A stretch of DNA of 64,000 nt from Macrostomum lignano. Taxonomy: Eukaryota. This document shows positions 43,593-48,011 of the stretch, piece by piece. Numbering within the stretch: the first letter of the stretch is position 1; each line of letters starts with the position of its first letter. Location: positions 310,001-374,000 of the forward strand of contig NIVC01000206.1 in NCBI GenBank assembly GCA_002269645.1. Reading direction: 5' to 3'. The translations under genes were made by a program, and so were the position numbers. The notes beneath the pieces are model-generated. The model worked only from the letters and a program-made list of their open reading frames with translations, made no database searches and had not been told where the DNA came from.

Positions 43593-46500
43593 ATGACTGC
43601 CGAGGTTAAACATGCTGCGGGGTTGGACAGCCGGCAGCCTCCTATGAAAGAGGTGGGTTTTTTGCACTTTCTGTAGGAGTGGCCTGTTGTGTGCCTTGTC
43701 TGTCTGCCCTGTCCTATTCTGTCTGTCTGTTCTGTCTGCCCTGTCCTGTTCTGTCTGTCTGTTCTGTCTGCCCTGTCCTGTTCTGTCTGTCTGTTCTGTC
43801 TGTCCTGTCCTGTTCTGTCTGTGTTCTGTCTGGTTGTCTGTCTGTCTGTCTGTCTGTCTGTTCTGTCTGTGTTCTGTCTGGTTGTCTGTCTGTCTGTCTG
43901 TCTGTCTGTTCTGTCTGTGTGTTCTGTCCTGTCCTGTTCTGTCTGTCTGTCTGTTGTCTGTCTGTCCTGTCCTGTTCTGTCTGTGTTCTGTCTGTTCTGT
44001 CCTGTTCTGTCTGTGTTCTGTCTGGTTGTCTGTCTGTCTGTCTGTCTGTTCTGTCTGTGTGTTCTGCCCTGTCCTGTTCTGTCTGTCTGTCTGTTGTCTG
44101 TCTGTCCTGTCCTGTTCTGTCTGTGTTCTGTCTGGTTGTCTGTCTGTCTGTCTGTCTGTCTGTCTGTCTGTCTGTCTGTCTGTCTGTCTGTCTGTCTGTC
44201 TGTCTGTCTGTCTGTCTGTCTGTCTGTCTGTCTGTTTGTCTGCCTGTCCTGCAGACCTGCATGATCCACCTTACTACTCCATTTGCATTCCATCCCAGCT
44301 GCAATTCGCTGTCAACATGACCTGTCAATCATGCGCCGACTCGGTCAGTCGAGTTCTATCCAGTCACCAGCCGGCAAGCGACTTCGCGGACATCCGAATT
44401 CAACTGACTGAACAGCGGGTCATCCTGCGCACTTCGCTGCACGTTGACTCGGTGCTGGAGCTGCTGGAGACCACCGGCTGTCGGGCTGTGCTGCAAGGCG
44501 TTGGCACAGCCAGCCAGGGCATGCGGGGTCAGGACTTCGCATCTGGCGTCGTACAATTGGAATCAGTTTATACTACTAATACTAGTAGTGTCCAGGGAGT
44601 AGTTCGAATTTTGCAGCCAGACGATCAGCAGTGCCTGTTCGATGGCACAGTGGACGGTCTGGAGCGCGACAGTTGGTACAGCCTCGAGGTCCGTCAGGGC
44701 GGTGATCTGTCTGGGGGGTCTGACACATGTGGTCCGGTGTATAATGACGGCTCTGATGATGCACAGGTGCGTTCTGTGTTATATATCCCTGTTTTTGTCT
44801 GTCTGCATCTTGGGGTGTACGCTCTCTCACCTTACAGCATTCGCTCTCTCACCTTACAGCATCCGCTCTCTCACCTTACAACATCCGCTCTCTCACCTTA
44901 CAGCATCCGCTCTCTCACCTTACAGCATCCGCTCTCTCACCTTACAGCATTCGCTCTCTCACCTTACAGCATCCGCTCTCTCATAAGTTAAGGCATCCGC
45001 TCTCATCTTACAGCATCCGCTCTCTCACCTTACAGCATCCGCTCTCTCACCTTACAGCATTCGCTCTCTCACCTTACAGCATCCGCTCTCTCATAAGTTA
45101 AGGCATCCGCTCTCATCTTACAGCATCCGCTCTGTCTCCTTACAGCATCCGCTCTGTCACCTTACAGCATCCGCTCCCTCATCAGTTACAGCATCCTCTC
45201 TCTTAGCTTACAGCATCCGCTCCCTCATCAGTTACAGCATCCTCTCTCTTAGATTACAGCATCCGCTCCCTCATCAGTTACAGCATCCTCTCTTTTAGCT
45301 TACAGCATCCGCTCTCTCACCTTACAGCATCCGCTCTCTCACCTTACAGCATCCGCTCCCTCATCAGTTACAGCATTCGCTCCCTCATCAGTTACAGCAT
45401 CCGCTCCCTCATCAGTTACAGCATTCGCTCTCTCATCTTACAGCATCCGCTCTCTCACCTTACAGCATCCGCTCTCTCACCTTACAGCATCCGCTCCCTC
45501 ATCAGTTACAGCATCCGCTCCCTCATCAGTTACAGCATCCGCTCCCTCATCAGTTACAGCATCCGCTCCCTCATCAGTTACAGCATCTGCTTCCTCATCG
45601 GTTAGAGCATCCGCCCCTTACTGTACTAGTATCTTTCAGCATCTGTCTCGTTTTGCGAACTCAAAAATATCTGATAGAGTTATTTCTTTAGACAGGTTTA
45701 GCTGTAAATGTTTTCAGACTGCCAAAAAGACATACAATATACCAGTACATAGAAACATACAAAAAATCAACTAACAACAGCGTCTCCATGGCAACTCAAA
45801 TGCCTACGGCCTGACCAGCGTACTGGCGGACGAGTTGACCTGCCCGCGGCCTCATCTAGTCCCAGTCGCCTCAGGTTTCCTATCCAACGATTTGCGACCG
45901 CTAAGCGGCTTGCAAAAGTTTCTGGCCGCTAATTTTCCCGCCCCAGACTTGCGGCATCTGAAGCGGGCCGCCCCGGCCGCCTCCGCGCCTGACTGCAGTC
46001 GCCGATTTCGCGTTCTCCTTTGCCACGCCGCCGACTTACCTAATTTGGAATGTTCTGAAGAATTTTCAACGATTTGGAGACCTAAATTAGATAGCGTAGA
46101 AATTGTTATGGCGCCGGGTAGTGCGCCGCGTACCAGGCGACAATGGGAGCTCACTTCCGGTTATTGGCCCTGCTCGTTTCATGCTGACAAGTCTATCGAA
46201 TCGGAGCTGTCGTTGGATTGCTTTACTAAAGCTGAAGGTGTCGCTTGTCTGAGGCATATGCTGCGCTCGCTGGCTCTCGGTCGAACTTCCGGTTCTGCGT
46301 CTGCCGATACTTCCGGTCTGAAACCCGCTTCCGGTTTCACGTCTGCCGATACTTCCGGTTTGAAACCCGCATCCACTTCCGGTTCCACGTCTGCTGATAC
46401 TTCCGGTCTGAAACCCGGTTCCACGTCTGCTGATACTTCCGGTCTGAAACCCGGTTCCACGTCTGCTGATACTTCCTGTCTGAAACCCGCTTCCACTTCC

Positions 46501-48011
46501 GGTCCTGCATCCGCTTCATCTTCTTCTGCATTCGCCGCTCTGCGCCTCCCAGTCCCCCAATCGGCCTGCCTAATCGTGGACCCTCGCAACGACACGGTGC
46601 TGGTGGAATGCCAAGACGAGCGCCACCTCTGCCCGACCTGGCACGCCACCCTCCGGGCCGTCCAACAGCTGGGCGGCCGAGGTGACTACCTGTGCACCGG
46701 CCTGGACGCTTACGTCACCGACGAGCCGTGCCACATGTGCGCTATGGCGCTGCTGCACTCCCGGGTGGCTCGGGTTTTCTACTGCCGACCGAGGCCGCGC
46801 GGCGCCCTCGGCAGCATCGCCAAACTGCACTGCCATCCGCGATTGAATCATCGGTTCCGCGTGTACCGACTTTTCCCTCTGAGTGCGGCTCGAACTGGGG
46901 AGAGTTGACGGTTGGATTGCGATTCTTGCTTGCTCTTTAACCTGGCCCTTTGTCGGCCACCGTTGTCCTTCAGTTGGTGTAGCTACCCTTCAGTTGGTGT
47001 ACCTACCCTTCAGTTGGTGTAGCTACTCTTCAGTTGGTGTAGCTACCCTTCAGTTGGTGTAGCTACCCTTCAGTTGGTGTAGCTACCCTTCAGTTGGTGT
47101 AGCTACTCTTCAGTTGGTGTAGCTACCCTTCAGTTGGTGTAGCTACCCTTCAGTTGGTGTAGCTACCCTTCAGTTGGTGTAGCTACCCTTCAGTTGGTGT
47201 AGCTACCCTTCAGTTGGTGTAGCTACCCTTCAGTTGGTGTAGCTACCCTTCAGTTGGTGTAGCTACCCTTCAGTTGGTGTAGCTACCCTTCAGTTGGTGT
47301 AGCTACCCTTCAGTTGGTGTAGCTACCCTTCAGTTGGTGTAGCAACACTTCAGTTGGTGTAGCTACCCTTCAGTTGGTGTAGCTACCCTTCAGTTGGTGT
47401 AGCTACCCTTCAGTTGGTGTAGCAACCCTTCAGTTGGTGTACCTACCCTTCCGTTGGTGTAGCAACCCTTCAGTTTTTCCACTACCCAGTCTACTCTGTA
47501 CCCTAATCTTCTGCGTTCTACTTTGTTCTCCTGCGCATAAATCTATGGAATAAATAAAAGCCAATTGAAGTGAAAAAATTGACGCCTGCATTTATAGCAT
47601 TTTGTCTCGCTTCTTATTGGGACACTTTAAAACAATTAATGCAAATTTTTATTACAATGTTCGTATCACACTACTTTTTCGTTAGTTATTTTTTCAATCA
47701 ATCCTTCCCAGTCTGACGATCCCTCCGGACTGGTCGGTCGAGTTCACACTGGGCCGAGTGGGCGGCTTCGATTCAGCTTGATTTCGAATCGACTTCGCTT
47801 ATGGAATCTTGTGGGCCGCTGCCTCACAGTGAGCAAGTCTGCCGGTTGCAGCGAGAACGTCTGCGCCGCAGGCATTGTGGCGCGATCTGCAGGGCTATTC
47901 GCCAACGACAAACGAATCTGCTCCTGCGATGGCGTTGAAATTTGGAGCGAACGCGACGTGCCATCGGTTGGGGCTGGTAGAGCCGCTGCTGCGGCCGCTT
48001 TGAAAAAGTGA
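43593..48011 (+). CDS. CCS: Copper chaperone for superoxide dismutase; exons 43593-43652, 44299-44766, 47712-48011 (275 aa)
   Basis: HMA domain [15 protein letters not shown]-like domain, C-terminal [21 protein letters not shown] (CxC). Both introns are phase-0 GT-AG. Confidence 0.93.
43690..44240. repeat. (TCTG)n-rich microsatellite in CCS intron 1
   Basis: Read directly. Confidence 0.97.
44820..45600. repeat. 22-bp minisatellite (acagcatccgctctctcacctt) in CCS intron 2
   Basis: Tandem units. Confidence 0.96.
45781..46908 (+). CDS. ADAT3: tRNA adenosine-34 deaminase non-catalytic subunit, nested in CCS intron 2
   Basis: WPCSFH, LIVDP, HATLRA (no catalytic Glu), [31 protein letters not shown]...LNHRFRVY. 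Frame is open from the ctaacaacag acceptor at 45781. Confidence 0.92.
46970..47470. repeat. 20-bp minisatellite (cagttggtgtagctaccctt)
   Basis: Tandem units starting about 60 bp after the ADAT3 stop. Confidence 0.97.

Follow-up and report, generated by a model that had tools for sequence, protein, structure and literature searches.

Genes nested on the same strand in an intron of a host gene, and flatworm genes whose start codon is supplied by a trans-spliced leader (SL), are the described systems closest to the locus considered here. The locus lies in a stretch of 64,000 nucleotides (nt) from Macrostomum lignano (GenBank assembly GCA_002269645.1, contig NIVC01000206.1, positions 310,001 to 374,000 of the forward strand; hereafter the window, with positions counted from its first letter), in which a predicted ADAT3 (Tad3) gene sits in intron 2 of CCS, a superoxide dismutase copper chaperone gene, and has no start codon of its own. 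In the cha-1/unc-17 locus of Caenorhabditis elegans, a same-strand gene is nested in the first intron, and the two mRNAs arise by alternative splicing from a shared 5′ exon that is itself SL trans-spliced. The shared exon is non-coding and both products act in one pathway, whereas the exons that would be shared at the M. lignano locus would add 176 coding residues. In human, the 5′ exons shared by ADAT3 and SCAMP4 are non-coding and ADAT3 uses its own ATG; this detail, like the statement in an earlier sequence-only reading of the window (the original prediction) that human ADAT3 is a single coding exon within a SCAMP4 intron and shares its first exon, is general background. What the literature does record is the sharing of a promoter, the two genes being listed as such a pair (PMC2568002). 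As in M. lignano, a compact ADAT3 coding unit is embedded on the same strand in a host gene and depends on the 5′ end of that host, but the host gene is a different one and no trans-splicing is involved. The convergent nesting that the original prediction suggested from the different host gene is plausible.

Among flatworms, use of the SL AUG as initiator methionine was shown experimentally in Schistosoma, according to the accounts of Cheng et al. (2006, J Biol Chem) given in PMC9851317 and PMC12582326, and was inferred from expressed sequence tags in Echinococcus (PMC3510090). The SL of M. lignano (CGGTCTCTTACTGCGAAGACTCAATTTATTGCATG) likewise ends in ATG (PMC8629364); it is 35 nt long, with ...UUGCAUG as its 3′ end. 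No report of SL-AUG initiation in M. lignano, or for ADAT3, was found. The ADAT3 locus resembles these SL-dependent open reading frames (ORFs) in that the SL of the species ends in AUG, the acceptor lies directly before the ORF, in phase 0, and no in-frame AUG precedes the conserved N-terminus; it differs from them in that the acceptor lies inside an intron of another gene, with an in-frame cis donor upstream.

Trans-splicing affects 30-39% of M. lignano genes, and 15% of the genes are in operons (PMC8629364; PMC5730564), which are defined for this species as SL-resolved series of genes on the same strand, with a repeat-adjusted spacer of less than 1 kb and a trans-spliced downstream gene. With these units (PMC5730564; PMC8629364) the locus shares a same-strand series of genes, poly(A) signals 75-160 nt before the next acceptor and repeat-filled spacers, but ADAT3 lies inside a single gene, the last exon of which follows the ADAT3 poly(A) signal. 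Finally, acceptors that take either the SL or an upstream exon, and thereby give alternative 5′ ends and N-termini, are known from parasitic flatworms (PMC12582326). The M. lignano acceptor may be of this kind, although such dual acceptors are documented in Neodermata and not in Macrostomum, and the cis partner at the M. lignano locus would be a different functional gene, CCS.

An ADAT3 exon in intron 2 of CCS

The elements of the two genes are as follows.

43593 to 43652, plus strand: CCS exon 1, with the ATG; 20 codons, phase-0 donor GAG/GTGGGT
44299 to 44766, plus strand: CCS exon 2, coding for the HMA domain (MTCQSC) and for the first half of the domain that is SOD-like; phase-0 donor CAG/GTGCGT
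45772 to 45780, plus strand: 3′ splice site, an in-frame TAA followed by CAACAG; candidate for use in trans (SL) and/or in cis
45781 to 46908, plus strand: ADAT3/Tad3 coding exon, 375 codons and TGA (46906-46908), inside CCS intron 2
45788 to 45814, plus strand: out-of-frame ORF of 8 codons (MATQMPTA and stop; ATG at 45788, frame +1), 7 nt 3′ of the would-be SL AUG
47549 to 47554, plus strand: presumed ADAT3 poly(A) signal, the sole AATAAA from the ADAT3 stop to CCS exon 3
47712 to 48011, plus strand: CCS exon 3 (last), coding for the rest of the SOD-like domain and for the CSC motif; strong pyrimidine-rich acceptor

When the CCS exons were spliced by hand, the product of 275 amino acids (aa) was identical, letter for letter, to the GenBank protein PAA88020.1 (BOX15_Mlig003964g6). 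It has the domains of a CCS, namely an HMA domain 1 with MxCxxC (MTCQSC), a SOD-like domain 2 and a domain 3 with CxC (ICSCDG, encoded by exon 3); the Pfam matches to HMA (E 2e-4) and Sod_Cu (E 2.8e-6) are both slightly below the curated cut-offs, and the paralogue PAA71141.1 carries the UniRef name 'Superoxide dismutase copper chaperone'. Exon 2 starts at 44299 (cccag/CTG CAA), and not at the AG at 44255, and ends at 44766 in phase 0 (GAT GCA CAG/GTGCGT), and exon 3 starts at 47712, also in phase 0 (ccttcccag/TCT GAC). The original prediction had held that the exon 2 donor is in frame both with exon 3 and with an ORF opening at 45781, and all of its statements about these sites agree with the sequence.

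The further claim that this ORF is an ADAT3 nested on the same strand in CCS intron 2 is borne out by Pfam, by full-length homologues and by a motif alignment. The ORF matches dCMP_cyt_deam_1 (PF00383; E 1.1e-10), and its top full-length relatives, obtained with a query that lacked the internal low-complexity repeat, are animal proteins that bear the name 'probable inactive tRNA-specific adenosine deaminase-like protein 3' (E as low as 1.7e-35, coverage 83-95%). In an alignment with 11 ADAT3s, the zinc ligands H289, C318 and C321 (H...PCxxC; PCHMC) occupy invariant columns, and the catalytic Glu of H(A/P)E is replaced by Thr (WHATLRAV, Thr after H-A; the other aligned ADAT3s have V, A, I or T), whereas ADAT2 and TadA have Glu at this position. 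The N-domain motifs HLKR (residues 60-63, invariant), TR.Q and WP.SFH are present, with H60, K62, R63, T119, Q122, W130 and P131 invariant or nearly so. An exhaustive search of protein collections with the N-domain alone returned ADAT3s and no other ADAT3 of M. lignano. Identified in this way, the ORF at 45781-46908 is the ADAT3/Tad3 orthologue of M. lignano and is predicted to encode the non-catalytic subunit of its tRNA A34-to-inosine deaminase.

The 5′ end of this ORF coincides with a splice acceptor. In the context aactaacaacag/CGT CTC CAT GGC, the in-frame TAA at 45772-45774 shuts the ADAT3 frame 6 nt 5′ of the junction, and the AG at 45779-45780, after which the ORF opens at 45781, is the sole AG with the ADAT3 frame open after it. 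As had been noted before, ADAT3 has no in-frame ATG near its start, the first being at 46108 (codon 110), within the conserved N-domain, and the ATG at 45788 opens only the 8-codon out-of-frame ORF. Because the conserved N-domain aligns from about residue 11 (L..VL..E..C...H.VP, with invariant L, C, H and P; fluke counterpart LVAVLSAEVECAHTHWVP), translation must start before 45811. An ATG exon within the intron, which would have spoken against the original prediction, was looked for in the 1,014 nt between the CCS donor and 45781 and was not found: the single ATG (45708) reaches its stop before any phase-0 GT, and the stretch 44767-45780 is free of GT[AG]AG donors, so that a separate intronic ATG exon for ADAT3 is ruled out by the lone ATG and the lack of a usable donor. 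With neither an in-frame ATG before codon 110 nor an ATG exon, the initiator must therefore come by splicing onto the AG at 45779-45780. The last 33 nt of the intron and the 5′ coding sequence of ADAT3 are identical in three paralogous loci, namely the window and two other contigs (L002 and L003); because the three share acceptor and 5′ coding sequence, the missing ATG is not an assembly error, and the possibility that the ATG at 45788 is a true start masked by an indel error is ruled out in the same way.

ADAT3 is missing from the GenBank gene lists, in which no gene lies inside the CCS intron on this contig or on the two paralogous contigs. Transcripts overlapping repeat annotations were removed before the M. 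lignano annotation was submitted (Wudarski et al., PMC5730564), and this filtering explains the absence, because two minisatellites flank ADAT3, which itself has a 36-nt repeat in its coding sequence. Neither ADAT3 nor Mlig003964 was found in the paper supplements and full texts searched. The presumed poly(A) signal at 47549 lies 157 nt 5′ of the CCS exon 3 acceptor, a spacing that is equal in all three loci.

Source of the ADAT3 start codon

The initiator AUG of ADAT3 is probably donated by the SL, trans-spliced at 45781, to give a stand-alone ADAT3 of 376 aa. When the published SL sequence was joined in silico to 45781, its ATG fell into the reading frame of the exon (ATG/CGT CTC CAT...), and the ORF counted 376 codons from the SL ATG. 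The junctions that would distinguish the possible products of the locus are as follows.

45781, plus strand: would-be SL/ADAT3 junction, ...TTATTGCATG/CGTCTCCATGG
44766 to 45781, plus strand: junction of the cis chimera, ...GATGATGCACAG/CGTCTCCATGG
44766 to 47712, plus strand: CCS junction, ...GATGATGCACAG/TCTGACGATCC
47712, plus strand: would-be SL/CCS exon 3 junction, SL/TCTGACGATCC

In the proposed mechanism, ADAT3 is a single-exon gene on the same strand in CCS intron 2, the start codon of which would be supplied by splicing at the AG at 45779-45780. Trans-splicing of the SL to 45781 would place AUG in frame before CGU CUC CAU, and the 3′ end of the ADAT3 mRNA would be formed after the AATAAA at 47549, where we infer the poly(A) site. 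A pre-mRNA that is trans-spliced at 45781 would discard CCS exons 1 and 2 and could not give CCS, whereas one in which 44766 is joined to 47712 would lose ADAT3 with the intron. CCS and ADAT3 would thus compete on a shared transcript, unless ADAT3 has an additional intronic promoter, and the weak ADAT3 acceptor, set against the strong acceptor of exon 3, would determine the ratio of CCS to ADAT3. The same acceptor can probably be reached in cis as well, from the donor of CCS exon 2, with a chimera of 551 aa as a likely secondary isoform.

Two further genes, 6-9 kb upstream of ADAT3, have the same layout.

36341 to 37525, plus strand: Lactamase_B_2-like gene, 388 aa; exon start 36350 (cttcag/GAA), coding sequence from 36359, no ATG
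39251 to 40141, plus strand: Rce1-like CAAX protease gene, 289 aa; exon start 39269 (ttccag/TGT), coding sequence from 39272, no ATG

Both were deposited as 5′ 'partial' proteins (paralogues PAA71140.1 and PAA72035.1). Their ORFs open just 5′ of [TC]TNCAG acceptors, so that the exon starts lie inside the open frame, and the SL ATG is in frame for both, 9 nt and 3 nt from the annotated start of the coding sequence; together with ADAT3, three of three start-less ORFs can be read from the SL ATG. As far as can be judged from the DNA, the two neighbours look like further SL-AUG-dependent genes, with predicted N-termini M+ESQ... and M+C....

Several observations weigh against SL donation at 45781. 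The acceptor is purine-rich (aaaaaatcaactaacaacag) and, unlike those of the neighbours, does not match [T/C]TNCAG, the commonest trans-acceptor motif of the species (PMC8629364). A cis donor lies upstream of it, and in nematodes such a donor tips the choice towards cis-splicing (Conrad et al., 1993, quoted in PMC8629364). The out-of-frame AUG at 45788, with G at +4, follows the weak-context SL AUG after 7 nt and would siphon off ribosomes. No ADAT3 derived from Macrostomum RNA was found in the protein collections, either by exact look-ups of four versions of the ORF or by homology and N-domain searches. Furthermore, the ADAT3 of parasitic flatworms has an HMA domain, and a chimera with the HMA domain of CCS could therefore be the ancestral, functional form.

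HMA-ADAT3 of parasitic flatworms and the alternatives

In the ADAT3 proteins of three Paragonimus species, of Calicophoron, Heterobilharzia, Schistosoma mekongi and S. japonicum, and of a cestode (Sparganum), an extra N-terminal domain of about 65 aa is present, in which G-C-x-N-C is conserved; the nine aligned non-flatworm ADAT3s lack this domain. Single-sequence Pfam matches to HMA are sub-threshold. A profile of the domain gave 34 hits in the PDB, all of them to HMA copper proteins (best E 2e-4, CxxC aligned), and an AlphaFold model of the domain (pLDDT 85.6) has the order beta-alpha-beta-beta-alpha-beta, with the best 50 structural matches in the PDB all to HMA domains (TM 0.7-0.8), including ATOX1, CopZ and CCS domain 1.

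The fusion is a real mRNA, because a trematode-like RNA-seq contig of 1,490 nt (L006; Logan SRR13259298) encodes the whole HMA-ADAT3 of 440 aa without introns, while the gene of Paragonimus heterotremus has five exons, with the HMA domain in exons 1 and 2. At its 5′ end (...GCCGTGTATAGTAGTGCATG/TCC ATG CTC) the contig carries an SL-type end, ...GTGCATG, the ATG of which is in frame with the ORF; this end appears to resemble trematode SLs. The Paragonimus genome has ttattacag/CTG ATG at the corresponding position. In a second trematode-like contig (L007, 170-330; Logan SRR5929441), the HMA-ADAT3 ORF (LYVTETSSSDLCKVERD...) opens right after TAG without an ATG, and the first Cys of the CxxC has been lost. 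This contig may represent a second SL-AUG-dependent ADAT3 orthologue, caught as unprocessed RNA.

Upstream of the fluke gene, TMEM126 is a recurrent neighbour. In Calicophoron daubneyi (L005) it lies about 190 nt 5′ of HMA-ADAT3 on the same strand, and fused TMEM126-ADAT3 gene models occur in Paragonimus (L004, P. heterotremus), S. japonicum and Sparganum (P0137, P0138, P0144 and P0145), that of P0138 skipping the HMA exons. What has been mis-annotated as chimeras looks to be an operon of TMEM126 and ADAT3 that is conserved in Neodermata; no TMEM126 synteny is seen in the M. lignano window.

In both M. lignano, if the cis junction is used, and the Neodermata, splicing puts a chaperone-type HMA domain with CxxC N-terminal to ADAT3, and the neodermatan mRNA is SL trans-spliced, as that of M. 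lignano would be. Flukes, however, use dedicated exons 1 and 2 (HMA and linker), with no SOD-like half-domain and with TMEM126 upstream, whereas in M. lignano the HMA exon is part of an intact CCS gene and the ADAT3 exon itself encodes no HMA domain, so that an HMA domain would be on the polypeptide only through the cis junction. No report of the HMA-ADAT3 architecture, or of its possible origin from an ADAT3 nested in CCS, was found in the searchable literature.

The original prediction left open whether the acceptor at 45781 serves a copper-binding cis chimera or a competing trans-splicing. Both remain in play, now with an SL known to end in ATG, the layout of the start-less neighbours and the neodermatan HMA-ADAT3 to be taken into account, and trans-splicing ranks first, because it follows a documented local norm, leaves no awkward half of a SOD-like domain and agrees with the SL trans-splicing of fluke ADAT3 orthologues. 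The principal rival, that ADAT3 is made chiefly or only as a chimera from the CCS ATG at 43593, with CCS exons 1 and 2 (HMA and half of the SOD-like domain) joined to 45781, poly(A) addition after 47549 and the two genes ending in mutually exclusive terminal exons, is judged unlikely. The junction on which it depends is in frame, as had been claimed (...DDAQ/RLHGNSN...), and gives an uninterrupted ORF of 551 aa without an internal stop, but a match of donor and acceptor phase is expected by chance in one case in three and is no evidence alone. The only database source of the junction is a set of three UniRef models (P0001, P0002 and P0005), which are ab initio; they were rejected as evidence, since they extend from the upstream metallo-beta-lactamase-fold (MBL) gene as far as CCS exon 3, include frameshifted parts and differ in the donors that they use. 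That ADAT3 lacks any start ATG of its own would fit the chimera, but the start-less neighbours have no upstream coding exon, and with them use of the SL AUG appears as the local norm. The rival also regards the locus as the ancestral state of the HMA-ADAT3 fusion gene of parasitic flatworms, and it is here that it gains support: trematode and cestode ADAT3s have the CxxC domain that non-flatworm ADAT3s lack, profile and model of this domain match HMA proteins only, CCS domain 1 included, and the fusion is present on one intron-less RNA contig. Against this descent, the chimera would contain half a beta-barrel, unlike the clean HMA-linker-ADAT3 of flukes, and the fluke HMA domain is not specifically CCS-like (hhalign E 0.0014, 21% identity over 57 columns), its sequence being too short and too divergent to show descent from CCS domain 1 in particular. 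The PDB matches of the domain profile to CCS are weaker than those to ATPases, CopZ and ATOX1, and fluke ADAT3 has no CCS-like exon within 10 kb of it. Animal genomes have only a handful of HMA-domain genes, and chance placement of ADAT3 just 3′ of an HMA exon looks unlikely; it is accordingly unlikely that the in-frame, same-strand position of M. lignano ADAT3 3′ of the CCS HMA exon is unrelated to neodermatan HMA-ADAT3. In parasitic flatworms, 66% of the SL acceptors are on average also cis-spliced (PMC12582326), and the chimera is probably present at least as a minor isoform. A broader reading, in which the acceptor is used both ways, the cis CCS(HMA)::ADAT3 product is functional and the locus preserves the ancestral flatworm state, is conceivable though doubtful. 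It is equally tentative that leaky splicing of a CCS exon onto a start-less ADAT3 gave rise to a metal- or redox-sensing (CxxC) subunit for wobble inosine, which was later fixed in trematodes and cestodes.

Two other explanations were considered. Transcription from an intronic promoter, with an unspliced mRNA translated from a near-cognate codon (CTG at 45811 or 45823, TTG at 45835) or from the ATG at 46108, is very unlikely: nested genes that lie on the strand of their host and have internal promoters are frequent in animals, and the near-cognate codons are in frame just 5′ of the conserved N-domain, but a scanning ribosome would first meet the ATG at 45708 (14-codon ORF) and/or that at 45788, the ORF of which runs to 45814 over the first CTG, and a start at 46108 would remove 109 residues of the N-domain, including the invariant HLKR. 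Moreover, the frame opens exactly at the AG, as it does in the two start-less neighbours. Least probable is a decaying or silent pseudogene, or an ATG lost by assembly error. One paralogous contig (L003, near 12460, corresponding to about 45968 of the window) does have a 1-bp deletion in a C-run (GCCGCCCCGG) that cuts the ADAT3 ORF at codon 102, and three UniRef models from an older assembly contain the same frameshifted peptide; either this paralogue is pseudogenised or the deletion is a homopolymer error that recurs. The ORF is, however, complete in two of the three loci (375 codons in the window and 477 in L002), with all zinc ligands and ADAT3 motifs and with the expansion of the coding repeat in frame, and three loci that were assembled independently have identical 5′ sequences. 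ADAT3 is essential in eukaryotes, and the exhaustive search gave no second M. lignano ADAT3.

Gene series, repeats and meaning of the locus

The remaining features of the locus are as follows.

42333 to 43361, plus strand: single-exon MBL gene, the immediate upstream neighbour of CCS; AATAAA at 43396 and 43448
43517 to 43522, plus strand: TTTCAG acceptor motif, 70 nt 5′ of the CCS ATG; putative SL acceptor of CCS, the layout being operon-like
43697 to 44248, plus strand: (TGTC)n microsatellite, which fills CCS intron 1
44820 to 45614, plus strand: 22-nt minisatellite, 35 copies of the unit CGCTCTCTCACCTTACAGCATC, each with an acceptor-like CCTTACAG
46278 to 46496, plus strand: in-frame coding repeat of 36 nt (12 aa), between the ADAT3 N-domain and deaminase domain
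46967 to 47475, plus strand: 20-nt minisatellite, 25 copies of CCTTCAGTTGGTGTAGCTAC in the presumed ADAT3 3′ untranslated region, with CCTTCAG in each unit

From 34409 to 48011 the plus strand carries an unbroken series of genes, encoding Tim10 (zf-Tim10_DDP), the Lactamase_B_2-like protein, the Rce1-like protease, the MBL-fold protein and CCS, with ADAT3 inside the last. The series is repeated, whole or in part, on the two other contigs (L002 and L003), which fits a multi-gene transcriptional unit in a genome that was duplicated recently. The MBL paralogue PAA72036.1 (Mlig003964g1) bears the same transcriptional-unit name as CCS. Short spacers between poly(A) signal and acceptor are found twice, from the AATAAA of the MBL gene at 43396 and 43448 to 43522, where the TTTCAG lies about 75-125 nt 3′ of these signals, and from the ADAT3 AATAAA at 47549 to 47711. 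No tRNAs, no members of Rfam families and no SL RNA gene were found in the window.

The SL ATG would also be in frame if joined to CCS exon 3 at 47712, where the exon begins in phase 0, and would yield a 100-aa fragment with half of the SOD-like domain and the CxC motif; this would be relevant if transcription runs on past cleavage at the ADAT3 poly(A) site. About 320 nt 3′ of the CCS stop lies a purine-rich (GGAGA/AGAGG)n array (48331-49224; GC skew 0.58), and a strong excess of G over C is seen in two further segments of the window, 8001-10000 and 28001-30000 (0.47 and 0.44).

In the two minisatellites that flank ADAT3, a trans-acceptor motif is present per unit (CCTTACAG 31 times and CCTTCAG 25 times), which amounts to 39-49 motifs per kb, compared with 4.1 per kb window-wide, and neither array contains a donor motif. 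These motifs could act as decoy or sink acceptors, or could merely be repeats of the kind reported in M. lignano operon spacers. The 12-aa coding repeat has no counterpart in the aligned ADAT3s of other animals, where mostly a short linker is found at this position; in L002 (12580-13060) it is expanded, still in frame.

The favoured mechanism is of a known kind, in that ADAT3 would be a flatworm SL-AUG-dependent ORF inside an SL-resolved transcriptional unit of M. lignano. The annotation in GenBank of this model flatworm lacks ADAT3, an essential and universally conserved gene that is without an ATG and overlaps repeats. The two start-less neighbours were deposited as 'partial' for the same reason, and if the SL ATG were added when ORFs are called, gene models of a whole class in M. 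lignano would be put right. The locus is also a compact natural test of the choice between SL and upstream donor at one acceptor, by which a transcript is split between CCS and ADAT3. The presence of ADAT3 in frame 3′ of the CCS HMA exon in the early-branching Macrostomum, together with the HMA-ADAT3 of Neodermata, suggests how the fusion may have arisen and that metal or redox state may be linked to wobble-inosine editing of tRNA; a functional cis product would imply that inosine-34 editing is under copper or redox control in a whole phylum.

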